NCBI GenBank assembly: GCA_946965045.2
Contig: OX337242.1
Coordinates: 2,108,001-2,172,000 of the forward strand
Length of the DNA stretch: 64,000 nt
Reading direction: 5' to 3'
Origin: Epithemia pelagica
Taxonomy: Eukaryota > Protista > Bacillariophyta
A program made the translations under genes and the position numbers. Shown here in pieces: positions 16,460-47,686 of the stretch (position 1 is its first letter; each line of letters opens with the position of its first letter). The notes beneath the pieces are model-generated. The model saw only the letters and a program-made list of their open reading frames with translations, had not been told where the DNA came from and did not search any database.

Positions 16460-17079
16460 ATGGCAACCATCACCAGCAGCCAAACAGTGTGTTCCACAGA
16501 TTCCACAATTCGGACCTCCAACGTCCAAAACCCAAAGCCATGCTCGATCACGGTAGGTCATGGAGCCGGAATATCCCTTGACCAACGGATCTCCAGCGCA
16601 TACTGACATGTATTTCTTTCTCTGTGTGTTTGCAGCTTTCAAAACGATCCAGAATGTCTCGTTTTCAAACATCTGAACGAGAAATTGCGGAGAGCTTTCT
16701 CCGTAACCTTGGCGTCGAGCTCGACGATACCCAGCAGGAGTTTTTGGGAGCCACAATTGGAGAAATACAGCGTCGCATCCAGCTAAACAATGATGAACCG
16801 GTGGACAACGCCGTTGTCCGTTTCATTTTTAATCCAACGGGATTGATGGAGAACCATCTTCCTGGATTGATCGATCATGTCCGCGAATTTTCTCTCGCTA
16901 GGCGGGTTGCCGAGATCCCAGATGAAAGCAACAGCGCTGGAGTCTCGTCTTCGTCGAAATTCGATCGGAGGCGGCGGCGAGATCCTTATGGACAATCACA
17001 CCCAGAGGTCGAGTGCGGGGGGTTGAGTTGCGGTTCCTCCCTCAATTCTCTCTTGCATCATGATGATCCTCCCCACTAG
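16460..17079 (+). CDS. Orphan two-exon gene, copy A (178 aa; exons 16460-16552 and 16636-17079), with a substituted C-terminus
   Basis: ATG-GCA-ACC-ATC start; 83-nt intron GTAGGT...TACTGAC...TTTGCAG in phase 0; homologous to copies B and C up to IPDESNSAGVSS. Confidence 0.7.
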
Positions 17080-17630
17080 GAAACCAAAGAACCATTGTCA
17101 AGTCGCTCGTTGTATGGAATAGTATGATTTACCAATCTTTTCGTTATTGTCGTCATGAGAGAATGCAATCGCAGTCGCAAGCCTCATGTCGTTTGGAGCA
17201 TATGGGTGTGTGCGTATGCACTACAAACGTTTGGGTTTGGCGGGTCCGGCCCTTTCCTCTATTGCGTTCTTTGGGTGCCGATAGCGATGCGACAGTCACT
17301 CCACTGGTAGCCACCGTCCACTCAAAACGAGTCTCATCATGTCTCTGTGTGTGCCCCAAAAGCACAAGACCTACTATACTATAGCAGTGAATCCACAATG
17401 GCGCGCAAGTTCCATTCATTCTAGTAGTTCCATTCGTTTTACCTAGTACATGGATAATCAATATCCGTGGGGTAGAACACCCTATGAGTATTCCTGCATG
17501 GAACATTTGCCCAAGAAGCACACACACAAAACACAAATGAAAGATCCGGTCACCACACCACAAAGTCCCAACCAGAGGAGTGTGACGTTCCACGAACCAA
17601 CCAACCAAGCAACATAGCCACCACAACCCT
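17017..17630. repeat. Segment D2, diverged direct duplicate of 15457-16230
   Basis: Same shared blocks as D1; overlaps the last codons of gene copy A. Confidence 0.8.
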
Positions 17631-17768
17631 GTCCTGTACAATAATAAGATTCATATCTCGAAACACACGCAACACTTCACAGTCGGGGTTCCATCATTGT
17701 CGTACCTGTCTTTGAAGATGCGCACCCACACTGCGTTCCATTCGCGCTCTCTCTCTCTAGCTAGCTAG

Positions 17769-18362
17769 CTAGAATAGAGGGATTACCGAGCAAGAGGTCG
17801 GCGTCAGATTCTCCGTCCAGTCCTGGGTCATGGTTTCCAACATGGACGCCACCGAGTTTGACGACGCCGATCTTGTTGTTTTGGTTGCTACGGTTGGAGT
17901 TGCCTTGGTGGTGAATGGTTCGCTCCCATTGCTCGTTTCCATTGCATGCTGCTGCGATTCGGTCAAATGGGTTGGTTCCTTCTTCTTCTTCGAGGAGGAA
18001 TAGACTTGAAGGGCATCCGAGTCCACGTCGTCGTTTAGTACTAGTAGCCCATGGTTTCGGGCCCGTGGCTTGTCCACTACATTTGGATTTGGTAGTTGTT
18101 TCGACCGAGTTCTTTTGTTGTTCAATTTGCGAGTCATTCGACACAGGCGCACTTCAATCACATCCACAGAAGAAATGGTTTGGAGAACCATATTATTATT
18201 CGGAGACTTGAAGAATTCGGTCTTTGGTTGGAGGACTGGAACGCTTTGTCGCTTTTGTTTCTGTTTTCTAGCCGCCGATCGTGGAGAGCCCTTGTCCGTC
18301 TTGCTCTTGTCTGGGTGTTTGTTCGGAACCACACTGAAGCGTCTCCGAAACAAAAATGCCAT
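17769..18362 (-). CDS. Hypothetical basic, disordered protein (197 aa)
   Basis: ATG-started ORF followed by a (CTAG)/(CT)n-rich 3' region; no domain recognised. Confidence 0.5.
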   Translation of the reverse strand: MAFLFRRRFSVVPNKHPDKSKTDKGSPRSAARKQKQKRQSVPVLQPKTEFFKSPNNNMVLQTISSVDVIEVRLCRMTRKLNNKRTRSKQLPNPNVVDKPRARNHGLLVLNDDVDSDALQVYSSSKKKKEPTHLTESQQHAMETSNGSEPFTTKATPTVATKTTRSASSNSVASMLETMTQDWTENLTPTSCSVIPLF

Positions 18363-18934
18363 GATCCTTGTATATTGCCACCACTAAGGACGATGGCGTT
18401 GTCACGACAAGAAGCTGAAACACGTGGAGAAGACCGTGGCACTCGGGTATTATAAAGGTTTGCAGTAAGCCACGACGATGACGACGACGACGACGACGAC
18501 AAGAACAACAACAACAACAAATTGAGCCCGCTCTCCTCCAAGGAAATCACCAGTCTCTCTCTCTCTCTCTCTCCGTTTTGTTTGCTTTCCGGGAATGGTT
18601 CCGAAACCAGGGCTGTTTTTGTTCGCGCACAAATGTGGGTCTGAAGAGAAACTCTTGCTGTTGTCAATAAGTTGGGTATTGCCCACCATGGCGAGTGGCG
18701 AGGATGATATTATGTGGAACAGGATGAAGCCTTCTTGTTTTCGAGGTGGAAGGTGCACCGCCCAACGTGCAATTGACACACATCTTTGCTTCCGTTCAAA
18801 GCTCAAAATGTCTTTTGCGACTCGCAAGGGTGTAGAAGTCGTACATTAGATAGGCATTATAGATTGTATCATCCTTGATCCGTTGTCCGTTGAATCGGAT
18901 GGCGAGATCGAGATTCGAGATGGAAGGTAGGAAT

Positions 18935-18995
18935 GACACAAGACACAAGACACAAGACACAAGACACAAGACACAAGACACAAGACACAACACAC
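18935..18995 (+). repeat. (GACACAA)n 7-mer microsatellite, about 8 copies
   Basis: Directly visible; a related GAGACAC x2-3 lies at 26281-26299 ahead of copy C1. Confidence 0.9.
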
Positions 18996-19190
18996 AACAC
19001 GGCTGCCAACACCGCTTGGGCGTGCTGTAATTTCAAGTTTTGAGGTAGTTGTGTGTCTCGCACTCTCGCACATTCGAACCAAGTTGTTGTATCTGCAAGC
19101 TGCGTTGTGGTCAGAAGGCGGGGATTGGACATGGTGATTTGAGATTGCATTCCCATTTTGAACATCATAACGAGAGGACAGGCTTTCATC

Positions 19191-19897
19191 ATGGCAACCA
19201 TCACCAGCAGCCAAACGGTGTGTTCCACAGCTTCCACAATTCGGACCTCCAACATCCAAAACCCAAAGCCATTCTCGATCATCACGGTAGGTAATGGAGC
19301 CGGAATATCCCTTGACCAACGGATCCCCAGCGCATACTGACATGTATTTCTTTCTGTGTGTGTTTGCAGCTTTCCAAACGTCAAAGCATGTCGCGTTTTC
19401 TAACATCTGAACGAGAAATTGCGAATAGCTTTCTCCGTAACCTTGGCGTCGAGCTCGACGATACCCAGCAGGAGTTTTTGGGAGCCACAATTGGAGAAAT
19501 ACAGCGTCGCATCCAGCTAAATAATGATGAACCGGTGGACAACGCCGTTGTCCGTCTCAATTATGATGCAACGGGATTGTCGAATCGCTATCTTCGTAGT
19601 CTGATTGATCATGTCCGCGGATTTTCTCTCGCTGGGCGGGTTGCCGAGATCCCAGATGAAAGCAACAGCGCTGGTGTCTCGTCTTTGACGAATCCTATTT
19701 TGGGGAGTTCTGCCGATGGTGAGGGGGACACAAACGACAGCAACGAAACAGTTGCGGACGGTCAAGCAGTCCCGGCTGCCCACAGCAACTGGTCTGTGGA
19801 CGCCGTGGCAGGCTCTGCTGCCCCTTCTCAAATCACCGACTTAACAGCCGAGACCGAGGACACATCAACTATCGAAGGAGGTGATCATGAAGACTAG
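19191..19897 (+). CDS. Orphan two-exon gene, copy B (207 aa; exons 19191-19286 and 19370-19897)
   Basis: Same 83-nt intron with branch point CTGAC and TGCAG acceptor; several exon-1 differences between copies are synonymous in this frame (ACA/ACG, TGT/TGC, CCA/CCT). Confidence 0.75.
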
Positions 19898-21332
19898 AAG
19901 TAGGGCAGCAAAAAGCACTTTGGGGACTTCAAGTTGTGAAGGGGCAGATAAACAAGAAGAAGAGGAAAGGATAATGCGAACAACAAAGTCTCCTGAACTA
20001 ATCTAGGAAAAAGTGTCATAACCTGAAATTTGAAACAGAGTCTCGTGTAAGGCACGCACATGCTTTAGGTTTGTCGGGATGGTGGTGGTGCGGCCCATTG
20101 TCTGTTTGGAAAATTTAAACTGGACTCGCATCCCAAGCGTGGGCAAAGAGAGGGTTTCCAGAATGTCGGACGTGTACCTTGTGGAATGTTCACGCGAATT
20201 TTTCAGTTTGGAGGTGAAGCGGATGTACTCGCTCTCCACGATTGGTGCACTCCTGCTGAATGTCGACCACAGGTCTCGCAAGTGGGAACTTCATGCGATC
20301 TGAAGACGTGTTGGATACGGGAAACGGTATTACATGGAAGCTTCCAGACATGGTAGTCAAGCCGCATGGTGGGAGCATGATGGTCGGTATCGTTGCGATT
20401 GGTGGATCGACCAAAATTCCTGCGAATCTTGGCTTGTGGACAAGAACACTAGATAGACTCTTTCTCCTTTGATGGATCTCGGTGACGAGGTCAGGTCTCT
20501 GTTCCCATCCAACCAAAAGACTTGTGAATTCGCATATACAAGACTATCCTGTCGACAACGAGTTCTTTCATGGTTTGTTTTAGCTACACTATAGTGATAG
20601 TAAAGCAATTCATCTTGTTGTAATATTCAGTTAAATCAATTGATCAATGCGGCAAATATATGTGCGGGTATATCACTGCATGGATGACGGTTCATTAGTA
20701 CCACCACAGTACCAAATCCAAGGTCGAACAATGTAAAATGGAGTATAATTCGAAGAAAGAAAGTCCAAGTTTGTGACACTCTCGCCATCAGTAAGATGGT
20801 CTTTTTCATTGTCATGCAGAGATTTTGTGGTTAGAACGATGTCAACCCACATTTATGCCATACCACCATGGCCTATTGGCTGAACCAATGTCACGGATCA
20901 ACTTTGCGAGTGCTTCGTCCATGACGATGATCCAAGTTGTTGGAGGCTACTACTCCAGCGGAAGATGGCAAAAACAGTGCAATCGCGAACACTTTCTAGG
21001 ATATTATGGACAACTATCATCTGAATGAAGCTGTGCAATATGTTCGCGATTGGAGAACTACATCCCGCGGTATCATCATCGTTGATGCGCAAATCACGAG
21101 TTCTGCACTTCAAAAAATGGAACGAGATACGATAGACACATGTGCACGTGTGGAGGGTCGGCCGGCGAAGACCTACAATCTCTACGAGTAGCTAGAGACA
21201 GAGACCAAGACCAAGTGAATACTGTAGGCATAATATTACAATACAAAATCGGCTCCTTGTCGAACGTGGGACTCGACACCGGGAATTATTAATACTACCT
21301 ACACAGCTTGATAGGGAGTAAGTTCACAACTT

Positions 21333-21353
21333 CCCTGGGACACCCGCTACTTT
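21333..21353 (+). mobile_element. Left terminal inverted repeat of the Transib/RAG-like element (C[C]CTGGGACACCCGCTACTTT)
   Basis: 20/21 match to the reverse complement of 31365-31385 (CACTGGGACACCCGCTACTTT). Confidence 0.85.
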
Positions 21354-21560
21354 CACATTCCGAGCGTTGCGTGTGTACGAGTGGTCTCACATAGGAGTTG
21401 CTCTTTAGTACGAGTAGCCTTTAAGTAGCACGTATCCCCCTCGAAAACTGAGCTCCTACGCTCAATCCCAGCAATTCACCAACCTCATAGCCATATTGAA
21501 AACAAAACAAGAAGACCATGGCGGCAGTTTGATCAACCTTTACACAATCATACCTCTGTC

Positions 21561-22016: not shown

Positions 22017-22081
22017 TCAACACACAAGTACAAAGCAAAAACAAGCAGCAATTAATGATGGTTTATTAGTATCTTTCATGA

Positions 22082-25000
22082 CTATCTGGTTTTTATTGTA
22101 TCAATTTGGATTGATTTTAAGCAAGGAAAAGGGTCAGTTCGGAGAGGTAAAGAGAGCAGATCATTGCGATCATCGTCTCGTTTCAATTTCTTTTGCCGAC
22201 TATTCTCATCCCTCCGCATATCCTCCTTTCTATTCTGACGCTTTCTTTCTTGTACCTTTGCCACTTGGGCTCTCACTTGCGGAAGCTTTGAAATGGTTTC
22301 ATCTACAATGTGGGAGAGGCTTGCTGACTGATGATTGAGAGATTTTGTCCGTGCCTCAGCTTGCAAACCAGTCTGATGAACTCTCTCGCCTTGCTCTTCT
22401 GTCAAGTCTCCCACTCCTTTGTAGAATCTAACAGAAGCAAGCAGATGATCCTCCACAAAATGAAACTTTGGTGTGATACTCAAACCAAGAGCTCGCCACA
22501 TATATGAGGATTGTTTAATTTGTTTTGCGAGCCTCTCGTAGTCGAGGCTGGTTGGGTGGTATCGCTTTATGGAACACAATGAAAAGACAGCATCAAGGTG
22601 TCCAAGTAACCTTTCATAGCCATCCAATACTGTCTTGATTGTATCTTGAGAAGCAACGACATCGCTATCATCCATACCAATCCAAACCAAGAGACAGTCA
22701 TTCCATAATGACGCAAAGATTTCGCGGCGGTTCCGAAGAAGAGCTCGCAAAGAATTTCCCTGTAAGTCTCCCCCATGGTATATAGCTGGCTTTATGCCAT
22801 GCTTCTTCAATACATCTTCAATCCACGCTCATAGTGGCTGACCAGTGGCTTTGCTGTTGGCTGGTAGTTGTGCCTCTTTCTCCCACTGCTGTTTTATGAG
22901 CTTCAGTTTCTCTTTTGCTGCTTTCAGCTTGTCCTTTGCTTGTTGCTGCGCTGGTCCAGTAAGTTGGGTACTGCGATTGGCTTCGGCAATACTTGCCACA
23001 GTGTCTTGTTGTTGATACGTTGCTGTTTCAAGAGCAACGTACTGCTCAGTGTACTGTTCCGCAGCACTTTGCAATTGCGAGATGAGACTGTCATGCACCT
23101 TATTGCCCAATCCAAGGAGTAAATGGAGAATTGGTGGAGCAGTGTCCTTTACCTCTACACACAACAATGGCTGCTGATCAGTTTTGAAGCCTCGTACATT
23201 GTTTGCACTATTCAAATATGCCGCAGAGCTGCTTTTCAACACATTTCGATGTGCCGCCATGCTTTGAAGTGTCCACATACGACCATGTCTCCTGTGTACT
23301 CGTGACCATTCTGCTTTGCTCAGGTCACAGTACCAACACCAGCAAGAAGAATAGCCTTCACGACCATAGTTTGTCATGATCTGAGAGCCATCTCCACTGC
23401 TGATGCATTGGATTGGAACGTGTCTAAGCTCTGGATCCCATTCGTTAGATACGGTTTCGTCTCCCAATGTAACTAACACAGCCCTTTCACGACCCTCTGT
23501 TGCTCTTCTCTGCCACACACTAATGGACCCAGCTTCAATTATCTTGGCAATTGCTTGATTTATGTGTGGCATAAAGGTTTTTGACAGGATTTCATAAGTG
23601 TCTTTCCGACACTTCGCCCGGGCAACAAGGAAGGGTTCAGATCTTTTGCAATGCTTGTCTCCGTCTATCCAACGAGTAATGATGCAGAGACAACCTCGTG
23701 AAGCCCCTTGGCCATGATCACAGGACCATAATAAGTCAATGGAGTGAAATTGTGGTATTTTGGATGACTGCTTCACAACAGAAATGACGTAGGTCTTCAA
23801 TGTTTCGAATATATCACGGCAGAACCATTCCACGGAACGACTTCTCGATAAAGAGAGAGACGATGTTGTCGGTGGAGGAATTTGCGATCGAGACACAAGC
23901 AATTCCTTCCTAATTTTGTCTCTTCCTGCCATGACCGTTTGTCCAAAGTGGACGCGAAGATGGCTGGCAATGATCTCTGCTTGCATTGTATTCAATCCAG
24001 CTTTGCAAAGCATTGCTGTTGTTTCAATGACAGACATCGGCTTGGCAACAACAATGTTTTTGCAAGAGCTTGCAGCACTGAGCATTGCTTCGGGGTATCT
24101 GTTTCTGACAAAAGCCAAGAGAATAGCAGCAGCGTGTTCCATTGATGACAGACCATCGGCCTCTACTTCGTCTTCATTTTCTTCTTCATCAATGTGATCC
24201 TGCTCTCGTTCAATGGAACAAGAGTCAGGAACAAACTGCTTCAAAATATTGTCAAGGAATGGATGATCTCGTTCATTCTCTCGTAAACACTTCATATTGC
24301 GTGACTTTGGTATCCGACAGAGACGGATGCGAGTAGAGTTCCCCATCTGAACGTTGAAGAGATCATACTTTCTCTTTGACTGTTCAAGAGTAACTAGGTT
24401 GCGAAGTACTGTCGAGACTGACCAGGTATTAGATGGGTCAATGCCAAACTTTTGGAGCGCATGTAAGGATTTGGCCTCAGCAAGAGGCGACATCATTGTG
24501 GATGAGACTGCCATTGCAGAGCGTTCTTCTCTTTTCTTTCGAAGGTCTTGGCCAAGTTTTATTATGATGTCCGCTGCATCCTTGTCAAAACTTTCAGGTT
24601 TTCTCCACCATGAGCGACTTGCAAGCTGTTCCCTTTTGAATATCTTGGGAAGAAGAAACTGATTGATTGTTCGGAATATCATTTCGTGCTCCTCCATTTT
24701 GTGTTGGTATTCTATTGTTGCTGAATCATCCATACCAGGATTGTCTGGAGAAAAACAAACTTCAGGCAATGGAGCTGCTGAGGAAAGAGTACTGCGAGAC
24801 AGGGATGGCTGCATTTCTTGCTTAATGGCCTGTTTGAGTTGATCAACAAATGGTTTCGGGCTGATTCGTCTTGGTGGCTGCGATAGGTGACAAGGCTCTT
24901 CATACAGTGGGAGGGCTCTTTGCCCAATTCCCAGTTTAATCCAGATACACTTTTGGTCCCTTTTTTTGGTTTCCACCTTGTCTTGGTACTCGGAATAGGT

Positions 25001-25099
25001 GAACAGGCGACTTGTATACGACAGTTCAGCCATGTTCAACAGTCGATCAAATCCATCAGCTGCATTCCGTACCAAATTTTGGCCTTTCTTCTTTTTCAT
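22082..25099 (-). pseudogene. RAG1/Transib-superfamily DDE transposase with one in-frame TGA (22829-22831)
   Basis: ORFs 22829..25240 and 22082..22810 are in the same frame (QPL*AWIEDVLKKHGI). Motifs in RAG1-core order: WSCDHGQG (D1), KDTYEIL, SGDGSQ...CWCWYCD (D2 plus CxxC), PPILHLLLGLGN, YHGGDLQGN, TPKFHFVEDH, EEQGERVH (E). Confidence 0.85.
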
Positions 25100-26009
25100 T
25101 TTAGTCACTTCAAATACAACAGAAGCCACACGGAATGTCAAGGCTTGGATGGGTGAAAGAAACTTGAGTCTTAAGACTCGAGCCCCAAGCGTGCTCCCAA
25201 CAGGATACCGTCCAGAGTTAGATACGAGCCCATATTGCAATGCTGATTGGCAATTGTTTTTTCAACAGCAGATTGGTGTTCTCAGATGGTTGGTCGAGCT
25301 GGGAAGGATCGACATTACTGCGGAGGTTTCAATGTTGGCGGCTTTCTTAGCAGGAGCAAGAGAAGGTCATGTTCATGCGATGCTTCATGTCTTTGCTTAT
25401 CTGAACTTGCATGACCGTTCGAGACTGGTCTTAGATCCTTCATATATTCAGCACGGAGAAGAATTGACAGCTGATTGGGCAGGTTTTTATCCAGACGCCA
25501 AAGAGGACATTCCAGCAGACGCTCCAGAACCATTGGGCAATCCAGTCCAGATGACGGTCTTCGTCGACTCTGATCATGCTGGAGATTTGATCACCAGACG
25601 CTCAAGAACTGGAGTTTTAATCTATCTGAATCGAGCTCCTGTAACTTGGTACAGTAAGAAACAGACCAGCGTCGAAACATCGACATTTGGGTCAGAATTT
25701 ATGGCTCTCAAAGTGGGCATTGAAATGGTAAAAGGACTTCGATGCAAGTTAAGGATGATGGGCGTACCTCTGGATGGACATGCGCATATACAGGTTGATA
25801 ACATGTCCGTGGTACTGAATACGTCGGTCCCTGAATCAACACTGAAAAAGAAGTCAAATTCAATCGCATATCATTTTGTTCGTGAGAATGTTGCATCGGG
25901 CATGTGTCGTGTTGCTTTTGAACTGTCGAAGACTAACCTTGCTGACATTCTTACAAAGATTCAAACAGGTACAGAGAGAACACGGTTAGCATCAATGATC
26001 CTATATTAG
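25100..26009 (+). mobile_element. Ty1/copia (CoDi-like) pol 3' fragment: end of RT plus RNase H
   Basis: EATRNV...GYRPELDTSP...QQQIGVLRWLVELGRIDI; VFVDSDHAGDLITRRSRTG; WYSKKQTSVETSTFGSEF; VDNMSV; SIAYHFVRE; NLADILTK. Confidence 0.93.
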
Positions 26010-26657: not shown

Positions 26658-27367
26658 ATGGCAACCATCACCAGCAGCCAAACAGTGTGCTCCACAGATT
26701 CCACAATTCGGACCTCCAACGTCCAAAACCCAAAGCCTTACTTCATCACGGTAGGTAATGGAGCTGGTATATCCCTTGACCAACGGATCCCCAGCGCATA
26801 CTGACATGTATTTCTTTCTGTGTTTGTTTGCAGCTCTCAAAACGATCCCTAATGTCGCGCTTTCATTCATCTGATCAAGAAATTAAGGAGACCTTTCTCC
26901 GTAACATTGACGTCGAGCTCGACGATAACCAGCAGATGTATCTGCTGTTTGCAATCACTGCGATCGTAGAAAAACCCAGTCTCTCTATCGAGGAGCTTAT
27001 GGACCTGAGTCCTCTTGCCGTCGTTTTTAACCAAACGGGATTGGCGAATCGCTATCTTCGTGATCTTGTTCACCATGTTCGTCGATTTTCCGTCGCTGGG
27101 CCGGTTACCGAGATCCCAGATGAGAGCAACAGCGCTGGCGTCTCGTCTTTGACGAATCCTGGTTTTGGGAGTTCTGCCGATGGTCAGGGGGAAACAAACA
27201 ACAGCAACGAAACAGTTGCGGACGGTCAAGCAGTCCCGGCTGCCCACAGCAACTGGTCTGTGGACGCCGTGGCAGGTTCTGCTGCCCCTTCTCAAATCAC
27301 CGACTTAACAGCCGAGACGGAAGACACGTCCATAAGTGAAGGGGGTGATCAAAAAGACGAAATGTAA
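26658..27367 (+). CDS. Orphan two-exon gene, copy C1 (208 aa; exons 26658-26750 and 26834-27367)
   Basis: MATITSSQ...PYFIT|LSKRSLMSRF; 83-nt canonical intron. Confidence 0.75.
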
Positions 27368-30267: not shown

Positions 30268-31385
30268 TCAAACCTTGATTTCCTTGATTTCCTTCTCTGC
30301 TCAGGAGATGAGTGTCTCCATTCCATCTTGCCTTTCAAACGCTTGTTGACTAACATCTGAGACAGTATCCAACAGAGTATGTTTGCCGGTAACAACACAA
30401 ACTTTGGGACATGACGTGGACAGTTTCAGAGTTCCCTTGGCTGGTGTGGTTTCCAGCATGCACCAGTTATGCGTCAAACCATAGAGAAGCTCTACTCCAG
30501 CACGTATGTGCGGTGTTACCAATAAGCGATCGTTGACGTCCATTTATAATGGACATGGGCTGAACTACTTGGTAGATTGCGAACGAGAATACCGCCGTAC
30601 TTGTTGCGTTTGGTTTGATTGTCGTTTTGTCCGCTTGTCGTTTTGTCCGCTTGTCGTCTTGTCGTTTTGTCCGCTTGTCGTTTTGTCCGCTTGTCGTTTT
30701 GTCCGCTTGTCGTTTTGTCCGCTTGTCGTCTTGTCGGCTTGTCGTCTTGTCTTCTTGTCCGCTTGTCCGCTTGTCGTCTTGTCCGCTTCATCTTGTCCGC
30801 TTGTCGTCTTGTCCGCTTCATTTTGTGAGGTTTGCGAGAACCATCCCGTGGGAGCACCGTGACAAAATAGAAGCACGACTCGTACTTCTGCAGTAATGTT
30901 GTACTAGAGAGGTACTGGATGTACTGTTAAATAGACCAAATAATGGGAATTGGGCTGTTCAAGAATATTATAGCCTATTGTGGCGAGCAGCTTCACGTAC
31001 GAGTACGAGTAGTCCTTGCCGTTGAGCTTATTTACCGATGGCTCACAAGTCACAAGACTGAGAAGTTACGTAGTGTACCTAACATTACTCGTCGGGCTTA
31101 GCTAATGAGTGATAAGTAGGACATTACAAGACAACAATTTCATCTTGTGTGTGTCATGAGGCTTAATACCGGGTGCACCGTTTTTATTGCCCCGGTCTTT
31201 TGAACAAGAGACAATCGCCAAAACGACAAGGACTAGAGCTGTTTAGCTAGTTCTAAGCTAAAATGCTGCCTTGTCTGCTAGCATAGGGCGCGTGAGGTCA
31301 TAGCCGACATAGTTTCGCGTGTTCCTGAATAGGAAGACTACTATGAAAGCGGAAAACCGCTACCAAAGTAGCGGGTGTCCCAGTG
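30256..31385 (-). mobile_element. Transposon right-end fragment (1130 bp) ending in the inverted TIR 31365-31385
   Basis: AAAGTAGCGGGTGTCCCAGTG is the reverse complement of the left TIR; the segment is absent at the native locus beyond 50575. Confidence 0.8.
30612..30820 (+). repeat. Minisatellite of TTGTCGTTTTGTCCGC / TTGTCGTCTTGTCCGC 16-mers (repeated in units 1-4; one fewer copy in unit 3)
   Basis: Directly visible. Confidence 0.9.
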
Positions 31386-31731: not shown

Positions 31732-32441
31732 ATGGCAACCATCACCAGCAGCCAAACAGTGTGCTCCACAGATTCCACAATTCGGACCTCCAACGTCCAA
31801 AACCCAAAGCCTTACTTCATCACGGTAGGTAATGGAGCTGGTATATCCCTTGACCAACGGATCCCCAGCGCATACTGACATGTATTTCTTTCTGTGTTTG
31901 TTTGCAGCTCTCAAAACGATCCCTAATGTCGCGCTTTCATTCATCTGATCAAGAAATTAAGGAGACCTTTCTCCGTAACATTGACGTCGAGCTCGACGAT
32001 AACCAGCAGATGTATCTGCTGTTTGCAATCACTGCGATCGTAGAAAAACCCAGTCTCTCTATCGAGGAGCTTATGGACCTGAGTCCTCTTGCCGTCGTTT
32101 TTAACCAAACGGGATTGGCGAATCGCTATCTTCGTGATCTTGTTCACCATGTTCGTCGATTTTCCGTCGCTGGGCCGGTTACCGAGATCCCAGATGAGAG
32201 CAACAGCGCTGGCGTCTCGTCTTTGACGAATCCTGGTTTTGGGAGTTCTGCCGATGGTCAGGGGGAAACAAACAACAGCAACGAAACAGTTGCGGACGGT
32301 CAAGCAGTCCCGGCTGCCCACAGCAACTGGTCTGTGGACGCCGTGGCAGGTTCTGCTGCCCCTTCTCAAATCACCGGCTTAACAGCCGAGACGGAAGACA
32401 CGTCCATAAGTGAAGGGGGTGATCAAAAAGACGAAATGTAA
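31732..32441 (+). CDS. Orphan two-exon gene, copy C2
   Basis: Same structure as C1; one D>G change near the C-terminus. Confidence 0.75.
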
Positions 32442-35345: not shown

Positions 35346-36463
35346 TCAAACCTTGATTTCCTTGATTTCCTTCTCTGCTCAGGAGATGAGTGTCTCCATT
35401 CCATCTTGCCTTTCAAACGCTTGTTGACTAACATCTGAGACAGTATCCAACAGAGTATGTTTGCCGGTAACAACACAAACTTTGGGACATGACGTGGACA
35501 GTTTCAGAGTTCCCTTGGCTGGTGTGGTTTCCAGCATGCACCAGTTATGCGTCAAACCATAGAGAAGCTCTACTCCAGCACGTATGTGCGGTGTTACCAA
35601 TAAGCGATCGTTGACGTCCATTTATAATGGACATGGGCTGAACTACTTGGTAGATTGCGAACGAGAATACCGCCGTACTTGTTGCGTTTGGTTTGATTGT
35701 CGTTTTGTCCGCTTGTCGTTTTGTCCGCTTGTCGTCTTGTCGTTTTGTCCGCTTGTCGTTTTGTCCGCTTGTCGTTTTGTCCGCTTGTCGTTTTGTCCGC
35801 TTGTCGTCTTGTCGGCTTGTCGTCTTGTCTTCTTGTCCGCTTGTCCGCTTGTCGTCTTGTCCGCTTCATCTTGTCCGCTTGTCGTCTTGTCCGCTTCATT
35901 TTGTGAGGTTTGCGAGAACCATCCCGTGGGAGCACCGTGACAAAATAGAAGCACGACTCGTACTTCTGCAGTAATGTTGTACTAGAGAGGTACTGGATGT
36001 ACTGTTAAATAGACCAAATAATGGGAATTGGGCTGTTCAAGAATATTATAGCCTATTGTGGCGAGCAGCTTCACGTACGAGTACGAGTAGTCCTTGCCGT
36101 TGAGCTTATTTACCGATGGCTCACAAGTCACAAGACTGAGAAGTTACGTAGTGTACCTAACATTACTCGTCGGGCTTAGCTAATGAGTGATAAGTAGGAC
36201 ATTACAAGACAACAATTTCATCTTGTGTGTGTCATGAGGCTTAATACCGGGTGCACCGTTTTTATTGCCCCGGTCTTTTGAACAAGAGACAATCGCCAAA
36301 ACGACAAGGACTAGAGCTGTTTAGCTAGTTCTAAGCTAAAATGCTGCCTTGTCTGCTAGCATAGGGCGCGTGAGGTCATAGCCGACATAGTTTCGCGTGT
36401 TCCTGAATAGGAAGACTACTATGAAAGCGGAAAACCGCTACCAAAGTAGCGGGTGTCCCAGTG
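35334..36463 (-). mobile_element. Transposon right-end fragment, TIR at 36443-36463
   Basis: Matches 30256-31385. Confidence 0.8.
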
Positions 36464-36815: not shown

Positions 36816-37525
36816 ATGGCAACCATCACCAGCAGCCAAACAGTGTGCTCCACAGATTCCACAATTCGGACCTCCAACGTCCAAAACCCAAAGCCTTACT
36901 TCATCACGGTAGGTAATGGAGCTGGTATATCCCTTGACCAACGGATCCCCAGCGCATACTGACATGTATTTCTTTCTGTGTTTGTTTGCAGCTCTCAAAA
37001 CGATCCCTAATGTCGCGCTTTCATTCATCTGATCAAGAAATTAAGGAGACCTTTCTCCGTAACATTGACGTCGAGCTCGACGATAACCAGCAGATGTATC
37101 TGCTGTTTGCAATCACTGCGATCGTAGAAAAACCCAGTCTCTCTATCGAGGAGCTTATGGACCTGAGTCCTCTTGCCGTCGTTTTTAACCAAACGGGATT
37201 GGCGAATCGCTATCTTCGTGATCTTGTTCACCATGTTCGTCGATTTTCCGTCGCTGGGCCGGTTACCGAGATCCCAGATGAGAGCAACAGCGCTGGCGTC
37301 TCGTCTTTGACGAATCCTGGTTTTGGGAGTTCTGCCGATGGTCAGGGGGAAACAAACAACAGCAACGAAACAGTTGCGGACGGTCAAGCAGTCCCGGCTG
37401 CCCACAGCAACTGGTCTGTGGACGCCGTGGCAGGTTCTGCTGCCCCTTCTCAAATCACCGGCTTAACAGCCGAGACGGAAGACACGTCCATAAGTGAAGG
37501 GGGTGATCAAAAAGACGAAATGTAA
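36816..37525 (+). CDS. Orphan two-exon gene, copy C3
   Basis: Intact; same exons and intron. Confidence 0.75.
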
Positions 37526-38476: not shown

Positions 38477-40441
38477 TCATGGATAGAACGATCCAAATTT
38501 CTTGACGGGTCCTCCAGGAGGAGATTCCACATCCTTGTTGTGGTTGTCTTGCTGGTCTTCCACGGCCGATGCAATGGCTGCGACGTCCTTTTGGACTTGC
38601 ACTCGAGCACCGTCATTGGTGGGTGTCCAATCCCGTAGCCAATTGGACCAATGTGGTTGTGGTTGTGGTTGTCCTCCATGTTTCGACGCCCGTCGGCTCA
38701 CGGTAAAGTTGATAACCTTACCGACAATGGCCGCCGTCATGGCCCGCGTCATGGCCCGTGTCATGGCACCCCTCAAATCTGGTGATTTCGCCAACAGGGC
38801 TTGCATATCTTCGTGTTTCCAACGCATCACGACCGAATCTTGGACAGCGACAATGGTATACAAGGCTTCTTTGGAGGACATGGCCGAACTTCGTTTCAAG
38901 GCATTGGTACGACGACGACTCATGCGACGTGGAATGGGGACCAAGGGAGTCGCTGGATCCGGTTGCGACGACAATGAGGATGGCAATGGCTGTTGCTGTT
39001 GTTGCTGCTGGTACGTGGCAGCTACGGCGGCGGGTGTCGTACTGGCAGCCGTCACAGGAGAAGGACCAAGAGACAGCGGGTTCGTCGAGTCTGGTTGCCT
39101 CTCAGTCGACGGTAGGGTGGTACTCGCAGCACTGATTGAGCTGGAAGCAGTACCATTGCTTCCACTACTACTGGTCGCCGTGGATGAAGTAGTTTGTTGT
39201 TGCTGTTGTTATTGTTGTTGTTGAGTATTCCAATAGGCTTGCAAAAAGGCCATTTCTCCAATCCACGCCCCCGACGTCCAACTCAATCGATCTTCCGTTG
39301 CTGCGGCATCGTCTTCGACACCGGCCGCTGCATTAAAGGAAGCCGCCGTCAGGCGTCGTCCCAAGGCTTGTGCTCGTGTTTCGCCCTGGGTGACCAAACA
39401 CACATGGGTCATGGCTTGTCGTTCTTGCACGACAATGTCTCCCTTTTTCACGTGCACAATTTCGGCTTGTTGATAAATATGTTCAAATTGTTTGGGTGTG
39501 ACACCGTGAGGCATAAAAAATTTGGAATAAACTTGTTCTTGGGCTTGCGTCATGTTGACGGTTCCTTCCCGTTCGGCAATGACTTGATAGATTTTCCAAC
39601 TATTGACGGCGGCAAAAATAAAACTCCAGGCCATGGGTGCGACTCGACGGGGCGACAGCGAATTGTGATAAATCAAGGCGGCCAAGGAACCGGTCGCATT
39701 CAAGGCTCGCAATTCAATCACATCGGACCGCGTGAATCCCACCAAGGCACAAATGGAACCAATATTAAGGACCAAGACGGCCCAATTGTCCAACCACCAT
39801 TCATACAAGCGAGCGGCAAAATCCACCAAGTAGGCCCACCACCGCACGGGAGGAGAGGCGGTGGTGGTGGTGGTTGTGGCCGTGGTACTGCTGGCCAACG
39901 TGGTGGTGGTGGTGGCCGGAGTGGCATGGCTCATCAAGGGTGCGGTCGCTTCCACAGTCGAAGCACTGGTACTACTGACAGCCGCTGTTGTGGGGGCACT
40001 GCTGGTGGAGCCAGTGGCCGATGTGGCACTGGGAGCGGCAGTCGTCGTCGCAGGAGGTGTCGATGCGCTGGGGGACGCCGCGGAAGGAGACGTTGGGGTG
40101 CTGGTCGTTGTGGTTGTCGTGGTGGTTGCGGCGGCGGCGGGTGGTGTCGTCGTTGAAGACGGTGGCGGCAATTTGGTAAAGGTTTTGGGTTTGGCCAAGT
40201 GAGTTTGAGGCAATTTGGGCAAATTGGGAAAGAGTCGCGGTGGTCGGGGTTCCGGGGCGGCCGGCACCCGAATGCGATAAAATTGACCCTTGTAGACACC
40301 CTTGATGGTAAAGGGACCACCCGTGTGACTTGCGGCCGTCGCCTTGGCCAATTCTTCGTCCCAAAAGGCTCGCACCTTGGAGTGACCGGACTGCAATCGA
40401 TGACGACGCAAGAGTCGTTCCAAAAAGCGGACAAACGACAA
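38477..40441 (-). pseudogene. Popeye/cNMP-like copy 3, inactivated
   Basis: CAA>TAA in the poly-Q (39209-39211), 12-bp duplication (RAMT twice) and a TAG>TAT stop loss. Confidence 0.85.
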
Positions 40442-41543
40442 TCAAACCTTGATTTCCTTGATTTCCTTCTCTGCTCAGGAGATGAGTGTCTCCATTCCAT
40501 CTTGCCTTTCAAACGCTTGTTGACTAACATCTGAGACAGTATCCAACAGAGTATGTTTGCCGGTAACAACACAAACTTTGGGACATGACGTGGACAGTTT
40601 CAGAGTTCCCTTGGCTGGTGTGGTTTCCAGCATGCACCAGTTATGCGTCAAACCATAGAGAAGCTCTACTCCAGCACGTATGTGCGGTGTTACCAATAAG
40701 CGATCGTTGACGTCCATTTATAATGGACATGGGCTGAACTACTTGGTAGATTGCGAACGAGAATACCGCCGTACTTGTTGCGTTTGGTTTGATTGTCGTT
40801 TTGTCCGCTTGTCGTTTTGTCCGCTTGTCGTCTTGTCGTTTTGTCCGCTTGTCGTTTTGTCCGCTTGTCGTTTTGTCCGCTTGTCGTCTTGTCGGCTTGT
40901 CGTCTTGTCTTCTTGTCCGCTTGTCCGCTTGTCGTCTTGTCCGCTTCATCTTGTCCGCTTGTCGTCTTGTCCGCTTCATTTTGTGAGGTTTGCGAGAACC
41001 ATCCCGTGGGAGCACCGTGACAAAATAGAAGCACGACTCGTACTTCTGCAGTAATGTTGTACTAGAGAGGTACTGGATGTACTGTTAAATAGACCAAATA
41101 ATGGGAATTGGGCTGTTCAAGAATATTATAGCCTATTGTGGCGAGCAGCTTCACGTACGAGTACGAGTAGTCCTTGCCGTTGAGCTTATTTACCGATGGC
41201 TCACAAGTCACAAGACTGAGAAGTTACGTAGTGTACCTAACATTACTCGTCGGGCTTAGCTAATGAGTGATAAGTAGGACATTACAAGACAACAATTTCA
41301 TCTTGTGTGTGTCATGAGGCTTAATACCGGGTGCACCGTTTTTATTGCCCCGGTCTTTTGAACAAGAGACAATCGCCAAAACGACAAGGACTAGAGCTGT
41401 TTAGCTAGTTCTAAGCTAAAATGCTGCCTTGTCTGCTAGCATAGGGCGCGTGAGGTCATAGCCGACATAGTTTCGCGTGTTCCTGAATAGGAAGACTACT
41501 ATGAAAGCGGAAAACCGCTACCAAAGTAGCGGGTGTCCCAGTG
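40430..41543 (-). mobile_element. Transposon right-end fragment, TIR at 41523-41543
   Basis: As above, minus one 16-mer. Confidence 0.8.
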
Positions 41544-41895: not shown

Positions 41896-42605
41896 ATGGC
41901 AACCATCACCAGCAGCCAAACAGTGTGCTCCACAGATTCCACAATTCGGACCTCCAACGTCCAAAACCCAAAGCCTTACTTCATCACGGTAGGTAATGGA
42001 GCTGGTATATCCCTTGACCAACGGATCCCCAGCGCATACTGACATGTATTTCTTTCTGTGTTTGTTTGCAGCTCTCAAAACGATCCCTAATGTCGCGCTT
42101 TCATTCATCTGATCAAGAAATTAAGGAGACCTTTCTCCGTAACATTGACGTCGAGCTCGACGATAACCAGCAGATGTATCTGCTGTTTGCAATCACTGCG
42201 ATCGTAGAAAAACCCAGTCTCTCTATCGAGGAGCTTATGGACCTGAGTCCTCTTGCCGTCGTTTTTAACCAAACGGGATTGGCGAATCGCTATCTTCGTG
42301 ATCTTGTTCACCATGTTCGTCGATTTTCCGTCGCTGGGCCGGTTACCGAGATCCCAGATGAGAGCAACAGCGCTGGCGTCTCGTCTTTGACGAATCCTGG
42401 TTTTGGGAGTTCTGCCGATGGTCAGGGGGAAACAAACAACAGCAACGAAACAGTTGCGGACGGTCAAGCAGTCCCGGCTGCCCACAGCAACTGGTCTGTG
42501 GACGCCGTGGCAGGTTCTGCTGCCCCTTCTCAAATCACCGGCTTAACAGCCGAGACGGAAGACACGTCCATAAGTGAAGGGGGTGATCAAAAAGACGAAA
42601 TGTAA
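41896..42605 (+). CDS. Orphan two-exon gene, copy C4
   Basis: Intact. Confidence 0.75.
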
Positions 42606-43562
42606 AGCAGCAGAAAGCACTTTAGAGACTTCAAGTGGTGAAGGGGCAGATCAACAAGAAGAGGAAAGCATCATTCGAACAACAAAGTCTCCTGAACTAA
42701 CATCTAGGAAAAAGTGTCATGACCTGGAATTTGTAACAGAGTCTCGTGTAAGGCAAACCGAGTGAAACTACCAATATTCCTGCGAATCTTTGCCACTCGT
42801 AGACAAGAACACTAGATAGACTGTATTTCTTTGATGGATCTCGGTGACGAGGTCAGGTCCGTGTTCCCATCCAACCATAAAACATGTGAATCCGCATAAA
42901 CAAAAGACAATCATGTCGACAACGAGTTCATTCATGGTTTGTTTGTTTTAGCTACCCGTTAGTGATGGTATTCATCTTGTTGTATTACTATAAGTTAAAT
43001 CAATTGATCAATGTGGCAGTGCGAGTATATCACTGAATGGATGACGGTTCATCAGAACCACCACGGTACCAAATCCGAGGTCGAACAATGGAAATGGAGT
43101 ATAATTCGAAGAAAGAAAGTCCAAGATTGCGACTTGTCCCATGTCGTCAATAAGTGAACAGGTCACATTTTGTATGTATTTTGTATGGCACTCTCGCCAT
43201 CAGTAAGATGGTCTTTTTCATAGTCATGGAGAGATTTTGTGGTTAGAGCAATGTCACATGTTACATTTGCCGATAAAAGCCAATACAAGCACCTTTACTG
43301 AATCGAAACATCTTGACATGAGGACCATCGTGTCTTCAATGTTGTGAATTTCACAATCTTGAGGATTCCAACAACGGATATATGAAGTCTATCCAATCGG
43401 ATCATTCCTCAATGGTTCACCTAACAGGATCCCATTCCAGTACCACTATCTACCGAAGGTTTCCTTACCAATCAAACGGGGGCTCGTTTCGAAACCATCC
43501 TTGGTTTAAATTTTCCCATGACACTCTCGCCATCAGTAAGATGGTCTTGTTCATTGTCATGG

Positions 43563-45506
43563 CTAGAACGATCCAAATTTCTTGACGGGTCCTCCAGGAG
43601 GAGATTCCACATCCTTGTTGTGGTTGTCTTGCTGGTCTTCCACGGCCGATGCAATGGCTGCGACGTCCTTTTGGACTTGCACTCGAGCACCGTCATTGGT
43701 GGGTGTCCAATCCCGTAGCCAATTGGACCAATGTGGTTGTGGTTGTGGTTGTCCTCCATGTTTCGACGCCCGTCGGCTCACGGTAAAGTTGATAACCTTA
43801 CCGACAATGGCCGCCGTCATGGCCCGTGTCATGGCACCTCTCAAATCTGGTGATTTCGCCAACAGGGCTTGCATATCTTCGTGTTTCCAACGCATCACGA
43901 CCGAATCTTGGACAGCGACAATGGTATACAAGGCTTCTTTGGAGGACATGGCCGAACTTCGTTTCAAGGCATTGGTACGACGACGACTCATGCGACGTGG
44001 AATGGGGACCAAGGGAGTCGCTGGATCCGGTTGCGACGACGATGAGGATGGCAATGGCTGTTGCTGTTGTTGCTGCTGGTACGTGGCAGCTACGGCGGCG
44101 GGTGTCGTACTGGCAGCCGTCACAGGAGAAGGACCAAGAGACAGCGGGTTCGTCGAGTCTGGTTGCCTCTCAGTCGACGGTAGGGTGGTACTCGCAGCAC
44201 TGATTGAGCTGGAAGCAGTACCATTGCTTCCACTACTACTGGTCGCCGTGGATGAAGTAGTTTGTTGTTGCTGTTGTTGTTGTTGTTGAGTATTCCAATA
44301 GGCTTGCAAAAAGGCCATTTCTCCAATCCACGCCCCCGACGTCCAACTCAATCGATCTTCCGTTGCTGCGGCATCGTCTTCGACACCGGCCGCTGCATTA
44401 AAGGAAGCCGCCGTCAGGCGTCGTCCCAAGGCTTGTGCTCGTGTTTCGCCCTGGGTGACCAAACACACATGGGTCATGGCTTGTCGTTCTTGCACGACAA
44501 TGTCTCCCTTTTTCACGTGCACAATTTCGGCTTGTTGATAAATATGTTCAAATTGTTTGGGTGTGACACCGTGAGGCATAAAAAATTTGGAATAAACTTG
44601 TTCTTGGGCTTGCGTCATGTTGACGGTTCCTTCCCGTTCGGCAATGACTTGATAGATTTTCCAACTATTGACGGCGGCAAAAATAAAACTCCAGGCCATG
44701 GGTGCGACTCGACGGGGCGACAGCGAATTGTGATAAATCAAGGCGGCCAAGGAACCGGTCGCATTCAAGGCTCGCAATTCAATCACATCGGACCGCGTGA
44801 ATCCCACCAAGGCACAAATGGAACCAATATTAAGGACCAAGACGGCCCAATTGTCCAACCACCATTCATACAAGCGAGCGGCAAAATCCACCAAGTAGGC
44901 CCACCACCGCACGGGAGGAGAGGCGGTGGTGGTGGTGGTTGTGGCCGTGGTACTGCTGGCCAACGTGGTGGTGGTGGTGGCCGGAGTGGCATGGCTCATC
45001 AAGGGTGCGGTCGCTTCCACAGTCGAAGCACTGGTACTACTGACAGCCGCTGTTGTGGGGGCACTGCTGGTGGAGCCAGTGGCCGATGTGGCACTGGGAG
45101 CGGCAGTCGTCGTCGCAGGAGGTGTCGATGCGCTGGGGGACGCCGCGGAAGGAGACGTTGGGGTGCTGGTCGTTGTGGTTGTCGTGGTGGTTGCGGCGGC
45201 GGCGGGTGGTGTCGTCGTTGAAGACGGTGGCGGCAATTTGGTAAAGGTTTTGGGTTTGGCCAAGTGAGTTTGAGGCAATTTGGGCAAATTGGGAAAGAGT
45301 CGCGGTGGTCGGGGTTCCGGGGCGGCCGGCACCCGAATGCGATAAAATTGACCCTTGTAGACACCCTTGATGGTAAAGGGACCACCCGTGTGACTTGCGG
45401 CCGTCGCCTTGGCCAATTCTTCGTCCCAAAAGGCTCGCACCTTGGAGTGACCGGACTGCAATCGATGACGACGCAAGAGTCGTTCCAAAAAGCGGACAAA
45501 CGACAA
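43563..45506 (-). CDS. Popeye/cNMP-like membrane protein, copy 4 (native start lost)
   Basis: Open frame, same motifs as copy 1. Confidence 0.75.
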   Translation of the reverse strand: MSFVRFLERLLRRHRLQSGHSKVRAFWDEELAKATAASHTGGPFTIKGVYKGQFYRIRVPAAPEPRPPRLFPNLPKLPQTHLAKPKTFTKLPPPSSTTTPPAAAATTTTTTTTSTPTSPSAASPSASTPPATTTAAPSATSATGSTSSAPTTAAVSSTSASTVEATAPLMSHATPATTTTTLASSTTATTTTTTASPPVRWWAYLVDFAARLYEWWLDNWAVLVLNIGSICALVGFTRSDVIELRALNATGSLAALIYHNSLSPRRVAPMAWSFIFAAVNSWKIYQVIAEREGTVNMTQAQEQVYSKFFMPHGVTPKQFEHIYQQAEIVHVKKGDIVVQERQAMTHVCLVTQGETRAQALGRRLTAASFNAAAGVEDDAAATEDRLSWTSGAWIGEMAFLQAYWNTQQQQQQQQQTTSSTATSSSGSNGTASSSISAASTTLPSTERQPDSTNPLSLGPSPVTAASTTPAAVAATYQQQQQQQPLPSSSSSQPDPATPLVPIPRRMSRRRTNALKRSSAMSSKEALYTIVAVQDSVVMRWKHEDMQALLAKSPDLRGAMTRAMTAAIVGKVINFTVSRRASKHGGQPQPQPHWSNWLRDWTPTNDGARVQVQKDVAAIASAVEDQQDNHNKDVESPPGGPVKKFGSF

Positions 45507-46624
45507 TCAAACCTTGATTTCCTTGATTTCCTTCTCTGCTCAGGAGATGAGTGTCTCCATTCCATCTTGCCTTTCAAACGCTTGTTGACTAACATCTGAG
45601 ACAGTATCCAACAGAGTATGTTTGCCGGTAACAACACAAACTTTGGGACATGACGTGGACAGTTTCAGAGTTCCCTTGGCTGGTGTGGTTTCCAGCATGC
45701 ACCAGTTATGCGTCAAACCATAGAGAAGCTCTACTCCAGCACGTATGTGCGGTGTTACCAATAAGCGATCGTTGACGTCCATTTATAATGGACATGGGCT
45801 GAACTACTTGGTAGATTGCGAACGAGAATACCGCCGTACTTGTTGCGTTTGGTTTGATTGTCGTTTTGTCCGCTTGTCGTTTTGTCCGCTTGTCGTCTTG
45901 TCGTTTTGTCCGCTTGTCGTTTTGTCCGCTTGTCGTTTTGTCCGCTTGTCGTTTTGTCCGCTTGTCGTCTTGTCGGCTTGTCGTCTTGTCTTCTTGTCCG
46001 CTTGTCCGCTTGTCGTCTTGTCCGCTTCATCTTGTCCGCTTGTCGTCTTGTCCGCTTCATTTTGTGAGGTTTGCGAGAACCATCCCGTGGGAGCACCGTG
46101 ACAAAATAGAAGCACGACTCGTACTTCTGCAGTAATGTTGTACTAGAGAGGTACTGGATGTACTGTTAAATAGACCAAATAATGGGAATTGGGCTGTTCA
46201 AGAATATTATAGCCTATTGTGGCGAGCAGCTTCACGTACGAGTACGAGTAGTCCTTGCCGTTGAGCTTATTTACCGATGGCTCACAAGTCACAAGACTGA
46301 GAAGTTACGTAGTGTACCTAACATTACTCGTCGGGCTTAGCTAATGAGTGATAAGTAGGACATTACAAGACAACAATTTCATCTTGTGTGTGTCATGAGG
46401 CTTAATACCGGGTGCACCGTTTTTATTGCCCCGGTCTTTTGAACAAGAGACAATCGCCAAAACGACAAGGACTAGAGCTGTTTAGCTAGTTCTAAGCTAA
46501 AATGCTGCCTTGTCTGCTAGCATAGGGCGCGTGAGGTCATAGCCGACATAGTTTCGCGTGTTCCTGAATAGGAAGACTACTATGAAAGCGGAAAACCGCT
46601 ACCAAAGTAGCGGGTGTCCCAGTG
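45495..46624 (-). mobile_element. Transposon right-end fragment, TIR at 46604-46624
   Basis: Matches 30256-31385. Confidence 0.8.
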
Positions 46625-46976
46625 TCCAGTACTCCTAGATGAAAAGAGAGACAGTTCGTCCACGACAAACGACAACCGCCTCCACCTCCAGCGGACTGCT
46701 CTTCAGCGCCACCTCCTGTAATGCGTAATGCGTTACATTGACAACGTCCACGGAGTCTAAAACAAGAGAGACAATTTGTCCGCAACAACCAACTGCTCTT
46801 CGGCGCCACCTCCTGTACTGCTTACATTGACTAATAACACAAAACTACTGTCACCAGACATCGTTCCAAACACATGTATCACGAATCACGACCTCAAGAC
46901 CAAGGCGGGGATTGAATCGGAGATTTGAGATTGCATTCCCACTTTGTACATCATAACGAGAGGACAGGCTATCATC

Positions 46977-47686
46977 ATGGCAACCATCACCAGCAGCCAA
47001 ACAGTGTGCTCCACAGATTCCACAATTCGGACCTCCAACGTCCAAAACCCAAAGCCTTACTTCATCACGGTAGGTAATGGAGCTGGTATATCCCTTGACC
47101 AACGGATCCCCAGCGCATACTGACATGTATTTCTTTCTGTGTTTGTTTGCAGCTCTCAAAACGATCCCTAATGTCGCGCTTTCATTCATCTGATCAAGAA
47201 ATTAAGGAGACCTTTCTCCGTAACATTGACGTCGAGCTCGACGATAACCAGCAGATGTATCTGCTGTTTGCAATCACTGCGATCGTAGAAAAACCCAGTC
47301 TCTCTATCGAGGAGCTTATGGACCTGAGTCCTCTTGCCGTCGTTTTTAACCAAACGGGATTGGCGAATCGCTATCTTCGTGATCTTGTTCACCATGTTCG
47401 TCGATTTTCCGTCGCTGGGCCGGTTACCGAGATCCCAGATGAGAGCAACAGCGCTGGCGTCTCGTCTTTGACGAATCCTGGTTTTGGGAGTTCTGCCGAT
47501 GGTCAGGGGGAAACAAACAACAGCAACGAAACAGTTGCGGACGGTCAAGCAGTCCCGGCTGCCCACAGCAACTGGTCTGTGGACGCCGTGGCAGGTTCTG
47601 CTGCCCCTTCTCAAATCACCGGCTTAACAGCCGAGACGGAAGACACGTCCATAAGTGAAGGGGGTGATCAAAAAGACGAAATGTAA
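46977..47686 (+). CDS. Orphan two-exon gene, copy C5
   Basis: Intact. Confidence 0.75.

Follow-up and report, generated by a model that had tools for sequence, protein, structure and literature searches.

How can a gene keep its intron better than the coding sequence next to it? This question is raised by a stretch of the genome of the diatom Epithemia pelagica (GenBank assembly GCA_946965045.2, contig OX337242.1, positions 2,108,001 to 2,172,000 of the forward strand), in which an earlier note, made from the letters alone, had described a hidden family of seven gene copies with a nearly invariant first exon and intron and a strongly different central coding region. The whole stretch of 64,000 nucleotides (nt) is referred to as the window, and positions are those of the window unless a contig is named. 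The answer that we favour, and hold to be probable, is that the copies belong to a lineage-restricted coding family with four members, named A, B, C (present five-fold) and D, which has been patterned by repeated ectopic gene conversion. We prefer gene conversion because segments of the gene group the copies in incompatible ways, because pairs of copies share long concordant runs, and because the flanks of A and B are more diverged than their gene bodies. The family is new and the evolutionary mechanism is known; on present evidence, the pattern is an ordinary evolutionary one and not a new recognition system. The locus is a clean, small case in which conversion makes an intron look more conserved than the adjacent coding sequence, a situation that is easily mistaken for selected hypervariability.

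In the most likely gene model, each copy has a predicted ATG exon of 31 codons (32 in B), an 83-nt GT..AG intron and an open reading frame (ORF) of 147-177 codons, and this layout occurs seven times in the window, each time on the forward strand. Copy A would begin with exon 1 at 16460-16552 (31 codons, MATITSSQ..., with its ATG in an ATCATGG context and an open frame that ends in ACG/GTAGGT), followed by its intron at 16553-16635. Exon 2 of copy A, placed by the ORF list and alignment at 16636-17079 (147 codons plus stop), encodes the helical domain and then a tail unlike that of B and C. For copy B, exon 1 (32 codons, with a 3-nt insertion) is predicted at 19191-19286 and the intron, from reading and alignment, at 19287-19369; exon 2, at 19370-19897 (175 codons plus stop), encodes the helical domain plus an acidic tail. 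The C copies were placed by reading and alignment, the first two coordinates in brackets being those of the predicted exon 1 and intron and the third those of exon 2: C1 at 26658-27367 (26658-26750, 26751-26833, 26834-27367), C2 at 31732-32441 (31732-31824, 31825-31907, 31908-32441; 1 nt different from C1), C3 at 36816-37525 (36816-36908, 36909-36991, 36992-37525), C4 at 41896-42605 (41896-41988, 41989-42071, 42072-42605) and C5 at 46977-47686 (46977-47069, 47070-47152, 47153-47686).

All seven loci described earlier are present, but they hold only three distinct genes, because C1-C5 are near-identical array copies that differ from each other at one nucleotide. A search of the whole 60.5-Mb, 23-contig assembly, in which the window is part of contig C18, added a fourth intact paralogue, D, located at G000:C18:2303136-2303462, ~131 kb beyond the end of the window. 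Nor is the family fully hidden: public protein collections already list the exon-2 ORFs, as unnamed predictions beginning with an internal Met (P0001-P0003 and P0006), and it is the proposed first exon that these calls miss.

Divergence of the central segment

Among A, B, C and D, pairwise identity is 89-98% in exon 1, 90-96% in the intron (a divergence of 4-10%) and 77-94% in exon-2 codons 1-34, which bears out the near-invariance claimed for exon 1 and the intron. The homogenised 5' block (16390-16737 on the forward strand in copy A) comprises these parts and ~70 nt upstream of the ATG, and identity among the four paralogues is 77-98% across its four parts. The C unit matches 16460-16737 at 90.6%, and then the match breaks off sharply. 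What follows is the central divergent segment, codons 35-67 of copy A (16738-16836; 19472-19570 in B and 26936-27034 in C1), which corresponds to helix 2 and the next loop in the structure model. Over these 99 nt, A or B is 36-39% identical to C (39/99 for A-C), as strongly different as had been reported; C and D are 44% identical (44/99), A or B and D 67-69%, and A and B 94%. The segment contains no indels between the paralogues. The acidic tail, which had likewise been described as nearly invariant, turned out to be present in B and C only, because in the alignment the tail of A is unrelated and D stops directly after ...SAGVSSC.

The contrast between intron and centre reflects the ages of the segments and not faster protein evolution. 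In the 28 central codons, the proportion of silent differences (pS) is 0.88 for A-C and 0.69 for C-D, and the proportion of replacement differences (pN) for A-C is 0.60. The silent divergence (dS) between A or B and D is 0.57-0.69 in the centre, and dS is 0.04-0.32 in codons 1-34 (segment 1). Residues conserved between A and C are encoded by a changed codon in 5/6 cases in the centre versus 3/23 in codons 1-34 (p 0.0025). When the C-type centre is compared in register, 37/96 positions agree with A and 42/96 with D, versus 24 ± 4 for shuffles, a similarity that is weak but significant. Because silent sites are as diverged as replacement sites and the similarity in register has been kept, the centre is the same homologous segment in all paralogues and is very old; it is neither foreign DNA nor a fast-evolving patch on a young gene. 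An origin of the C-type centre by frameshift or inversion was rejected, as it has no shifted or inverted match and the highest identity is reached at offset 0 in forward orientation, and a search for a donor of its 121 nt found them only in the five C copies.

Exchange between the paralogues

Along ~500 nt, the informative sites group the four paralogues successively as AC/BD, AB/CD, AD/BC and AB/CD, in agreement with the mosaic that had been noticed in the block behind the centre. In exon 1, three sites and the 3-nt insertion that B and D have in common pair A with C and B with D. In the centre, A goes with B. At codons 72-74, four sites within 7 nt, with AB/CD sites on either side, place B next to C and A next to D, and in codons 77-84 A goes with B again. 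In copy B, codons 71-74 (SNRY; 19580-19591, forward strand) thus form a C-type patch within A-type sequence, marked by four consecutive AD/BC sites.

These three incompatible groupings support the segment exchange that had been suspected, and so do two kinds of tests. A permutation test similar to the pairwise homoplasy index (PHI) gave p 0.029. Our own implementation of the Sawyer/GENECONV logic, with 5000 permutations, found the longest concordant runs to be significant for four pairs in four places: A-B in the centre (p 0.0002), B-C at the start of the tail (p 0.0014), A-D in codons 6-19 (p 0.005) and B-D in exon 1 (p 0.044). The divergence of the flanks tells the same: the duplicated units that carry A and B are 71-85% identical outside the gene and 94-98% identical from exon 1 through the central segment. 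B and C are 84-93% identical in the tail and 1.3 kb of 3' flank, yet 64% different in the central 99 nt. Incompatible segment groupings, long concordant runs and strongly unequal silent and intron divergence between segments, the marks of gene conversion, are all found in this family.

The following course of events would account for the pattern. Ectopic conversion tracts would range from ~10-30 nt, as in the SNRY patch of B, to ~350 nt, as in the 5' block, and would pass among copies that lie up to ~180 kb apart on one chromosome. They would homogenise the promoter-proximal region, exon 1, the intron, exon-2 codons 1-34 and patches of the 3' half. Much older lineages, namely the A/B, D and C types together with a relic type on contig C7, would survive in the central 28-32 codons, which encode helix 2 and the loop. 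Purifying selection would keep the hydrophobic core of helix 2, and exposed positions may have diverged by drift or become specialised. Conversion of the centre between the C, D and A/B types would have failed to occur or to persist, for which either low homology or selection could be the explanation.

Comparable situations are known from animals. In the primate L/M opsins, exons have diverged further than introns, since the introns are made uniform by conversion and the central exons are held apart by selection (Hiwatashi et al. 2011, PMC3213168). As in the diatom family, arrayed paralogues exchange short tracts, introns are more alike than central exons, segment trees disagree and GENECONV-type runs are significant. 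However, the protected sites of the opsins are a few known spectral-tuning residues, and selection against conversion was shown there with population data, whereas in the diatom family the protected block comprises 28-32 codons with saturated silent sites, and the A-B pair shows that the centre itself is convertible or duplicable. For the “islands of divergence” of Tigriopus GOT1, an article (PMC3728101) describes a sharply bounded divergent island in homogenised paralogues and new combinations made by conversion; in contrast to the present case, it deals with a known enzyme family and two paralogues. A literature search for gene-conversion families of diatoms returned nothing specific.

A perfect 14-nt palindrome, CGTCGAGCTCGACG, which encodes VELDD, occupies 16712-16725 in A and the corresponding position in B, C and D, with no difference between the four paralogues. 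Its end is separated by 12 nt from the point where the divergent segment abruptly begins, and conversion tracts could preferentially terminate there.

Coding, splicing and rival explanations

The sense frame of exon 2 is coding. This follows from a frame that is open and indel-free over 105 codons in A, B, C and D despite the saturated centre, from core residues kept with changed codons (L37, I41, I44, L50 and E54 of the central helix are conserved between A and C with different codons), and from a constrained tail, whereas the relics described below contain stops. In the tail, B and C differ by 8 silent versus 9 replacement changes (dS 0.19; replacement divergence, dN, 0.06; dN/dS 0.32; Fisher p 0.034), and in segment 4, dN/dS is 0.24-0.50. 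In view of these findings, it is very improbable that the copies are decaying, non-functional DNA, either pseudogenes or chance ORFs. Overall dN/dS is admittedly high (0.58-0.88), no search returned relatives, the tail has been lost in A and D, and relics are present on contigs C6 and C7; but those true relics, unlike the copies, show stops and truncations, and both structure models of the protein are confident.

Four of the relics are on the reverse strand of contig C6 (G000:C6:553223-553401, 558237-558415, 570656-570834 and 578560-578626). They are truncated to a 177-nt 5' core in which stops interrupt the exon-1 frame, the branch site has decayed and the 3' splice site reads AT and no longer AG. 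Another tandem duplication contains two of them, at a distance of 5014 bp. Contig C7 has an isolated fragment, also on the reverse strand (G000:C7:131748-131879), in which a stop codon precedes the central segment and the block that follows it. Its central segment is of a further type with the same length as the others, and successive pieces of its next block match C, B, A and D in turn, which fits an old family with several central types.

The two-exon structure is plausible. In A, B, C and D alike, the predicted intron begins with GTAGGT, has TACTGAC ~30 nt before its end, and ends with a pyrimidine tract and CAG, so that a 5' GT, a CTRAY branch site, a pyrimidine tract, a 3' AG and an in-frame join are found in all four; direct reading and a frame check give a phase 0 junction. 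The GT, CTGAC and AG signals are kept in A-D, and the branch site and AG have been lost in the C6 relics. Both exon-1 indels (3 nt and 15 nt) are multiples of three, and the upstream ones are 8 and 11 nt long. If the intron were retained, the exon-1 frame would extend over 48 codons and meet a stop within it. A serious though less likely alternative is that the genes are unspliced and that the conserved internal ATG (MSRF...) is the start of the helical protein, with “exon 1” being a 48-codon upstream ORF or an untranslated leader. The internal ATG is invariant in A-D, the public gene calls begin there, the unspliced exon-1 frame ends in the intron 52 nt before it, and the substitution data give no preference to the exon-1 frame. 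Set against this are three textbook-like splice signals conserved in A-D, two of which have decayed in the relics, the in-frame join of the exons, and exon-1 indels in threes where the upstream ones are not, although both exon-1 indels are slips of trinucleotide repeats. The exon-1 ATG also has the stronger context, since A at -3 together with G at +4 makes a strong start context. The public calls, all of which start at the internal Met, appear to us to be intron-unaware. Another candidate, antisense coding of the 5' block, was dropped as the main explanation: the antisense ORF is open through the intron in A-D, but it has no Pfam match, and in the C6 relics it has a stop in front and no nearby ATG. 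By our reading, its substitutions are mostly replacements, a reading for which the comparison of substitutions between frames is uninformative.

The earlier note had proposed diversifying selection on the variable domain, as in recognition or effector families, and had suggested a dN/dS analysis as a check. The variable positions do concentrate on one helix and loop with the core positions kept, the divergent block is sharply bounded, there are at least four central types of identical length, counting the C7 fragment, and in segment 3 dN/dS is 1.0-2.0, a value that comes from only 2-4 silent changes. However, central dN/dS is 0.50-0.63 in those pairs that have not reached saturation, and the silent sites are saturated for C, which is not an effect of protein-level selection. 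Moreover, exon 1 has no signal peptide or other hallmark of a secreted effector: 6/31 of its residues are hydrophobic and do not form a run, 13 are Ser or Thr, and one is acidic. Positive selection as the driver of the central helix is therefore improbable, and no evidence for a recognition or effector role was found. A more elaborate proposal combines selection with conversion: helix 2 and the loop would be a specificity determinant that exists in several ancient selected types (A/B, C, D and C7), conversion would keep the rest uniform, and the relics would be small-RNA hairpins directed against the 5' block (C6) or conversion donors (C7). We regard this as a long shot; if it were true, the genes would constitute a diatom-specific recognition or adaptor family with allotype-like diversity.

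Several points weigh against gene conversion in a coding, spliced family as the full explanation. All recombination tests draw on four sequences with 31 informative sites, and both structure models depend on an alignment of the same number of sequences. A central dN/dS below 1 is not significant alone, and centre plus segment 4 gives p 0.15 for A-D. The intron and exon 1 remain predictions, the 5' block contains too few substitutions for a protein-selected frame to be recognised, and the antisense ORF is also open through this block. Finally, the C6 relics have preserved the opening 45 nt of the intron best (87-91%, versus ~60% for the 3' part of the intron), and the 27-mer ATATCCCTTGACCAACGGATCCCCAGC is identical in relics E1 and E2 and has one mismatch in E3; that this half of the intron is so well kept may point to a nucleotide-level function beyond conversion. 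The 5' block might thus be kept, instead of or besides conversion, by an intronic or 5'-leader regulatory element, or as a target or source of small RNA. In line with this, what the four C6 relics have in common with the family is limited to the 177-nt core (74-81% identity), which reaches from the end of exon 1 through the intron to nt 60 of exon 2, and each relic ends in a 32-49-nt inverted repeat from the start of exon 2, which forms a hairpin with a 4-65-nt loop. We nevertheless consider a nucleotide-level function unlikely. An Rfam scan of 16300-20100 gave noise only, folding of the 5' core, done for both strands (z = +1.2 and -0.6) and for the alignment (6 pairs), revealed no stable or covarying RNA structure, the 27-mer is confined to family loci genome-wide, and a perfect 27-nt run at ~78% identity has, by our estimate, a chance of ~0.1 over this length. 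In addition, the discordant groupings inside the block (B-D in exon 1, A-D in codons 6-19) are as conversion predicts. Possible origins of the C6 relic pattern are a fold-back rearrangement at truncation combined with chance, occasional conversion between chromosomes, or a nucleotide element or small-RNA hairpin.

Relatives, fold and genomic surroundings

Protein searches and structure predictions were performed with the exon-2 proteins; exon 1 (31 amino acids) is too short for protein searches. In Pfam, the proteins of A, B, C and D had no match even at E<=10, and a word-based protein search returned only the organism's own unnamed predictions. A HMMER profile of the four domains, run against 1.84 billion representatives, found the organism's own proteins and one spurious bacterial repeat protein (E 2e-4). 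Metagenomes were scanned with a protein pattern and, separately, with a 23-mer of the intron, and neither scan gave a match; nor did the ESM Atlas or a sequence profile run against the PDB. The family is therefore lineage-restricted, in the sense that no homologue was detected outside this organism in the databases searched, in a comparison without a close sister genome; the protein family itself is new, and the earlier description of it as an orphan stands.

AlphaFold2 models of exon 2 of B and C were calculated from the four-sequence alignment. The B model is a compact bundle with helices at 14-25, 31-50, 59-66 and 73-91 (predicted local distance difference test, pLDDT, 75.8; predicted template modelling score, pTM, 0.66). 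The C model has the same helices plus a short helix at 52-56 (pLDDT 81.4, pTM 0.72), and its five models all reach at least 75. On the basis of these models, the exon-2 domain of ~75 residues would fold as a 4-5-helix bundle, and the 70-residue acidic tail of B and C is probably disordered.

The domain had been thought to be SAM-like, and it does resemble SAM domains in being small and all-helical (~70 residues), with five helices in the C model. This assignment was not upheld by sequence or structure comparison: the proteins had no match to the Pfam SAM families (PF00536 and PF07647) at E<=10, and no SAM chain was present among the top 50 rows of any of four structure searches (two with Foldseek, two with the exhaustive aligner VIA-align). 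Foldseek found no match in the PDB at E<=0.001 for either model. The best rows of VIA-align, for both models, were four-helix-bundle coat proteins of archaeal filamentous viruses, with Z 7.3-7.5, which is within the background that the tool states for helical bundles. AFV1 ORF140 (3fbz) superposed with Z 7.5 (root-mean-square deviation, rmsd, 3.7; 85 aligned residues) and the SIRV protein (3f2e) with Z 7.3 (rmsd 2.8; 73 aligned), but these Z values are under the helical-bundle noise level of the tool, sequence identity is 12-14% and the Foldseek E value is ~0.9. In our view, the likeness stems from a common helical arrangement and not from kinship with these coat proteins.

Our best guess, held with low confidence, is that the protein may serve as a small, soluble module for binding or as an adaptor, with a helix-2 face that varies among the paralogues and with an N-terminal extension, encoded by exon 1, that is rich in Ser and Thr. 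Should the central types prove to differ in function, the family would offer a way to study how paralogues specialise in diatoms. What is gained in any case is an unannotated lineage-specific family with a confident small helical-bundle model and a proposed first exon that is absent from public gene calls.

Some features of the surroundings concern the history of the copies. In copy A, the homology to B ceases near 16958, and an older duplication junction lies at ~17060. The tandem duplication in question (71% identity) brackets copy A, at 15537-16043 and 17060-17496. Its junction falls just before the stop codon of A, which is probably why A has an unrelated C-terminal tail. Between B and the C copies (22829-26009), there is an 803-amino-acid ORF on the reverse strand that has no Pfam match. 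It adjoins a 336-amino-acid ORF on the forward strand, which we take to resemble the RNase H end of a copia-type polyprotein, although Pfam gave no match to it at E<=0.01.

The C copies are part of a tandem array at 26304-50575, consisting of ~4.7 units of 5074-5084 bp that are 99.3-100% identical by self-BLAST. Each unit contains one C gene on the forward strand, a gene for a 647-amino-acid POPDC/cNMP-binding-like protein on the reverse strand and one 16-nt microsatellite. The 647-amino-acid protein matches Pfam PF04831 at E 1e-9 and is rich in poly-Q and poly-T. In the third unit (38477-40441, reverse strand), this gene is split at a poly-Q (CAG) run into ORFs of 410 and 192 amino acids, and it is therefore probably already broken there; the unit also has a 12-nt (4-codon) in-frame duplication (MTRAMTRAM...). 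The last copy of this gene (48644-50608) has a different N-terminus (MTTMTRSHHHH...), because the array ends within the 5' region of the gene. The microsatellite, TTGTCGTCTTGTCCGC, was detected with Tandem Repeats Finder in ~12-13 copies once per array unit, at 30619-30818, 35697-35896, 40793-40976 and 45858-46057, and is shorter in one of the units.

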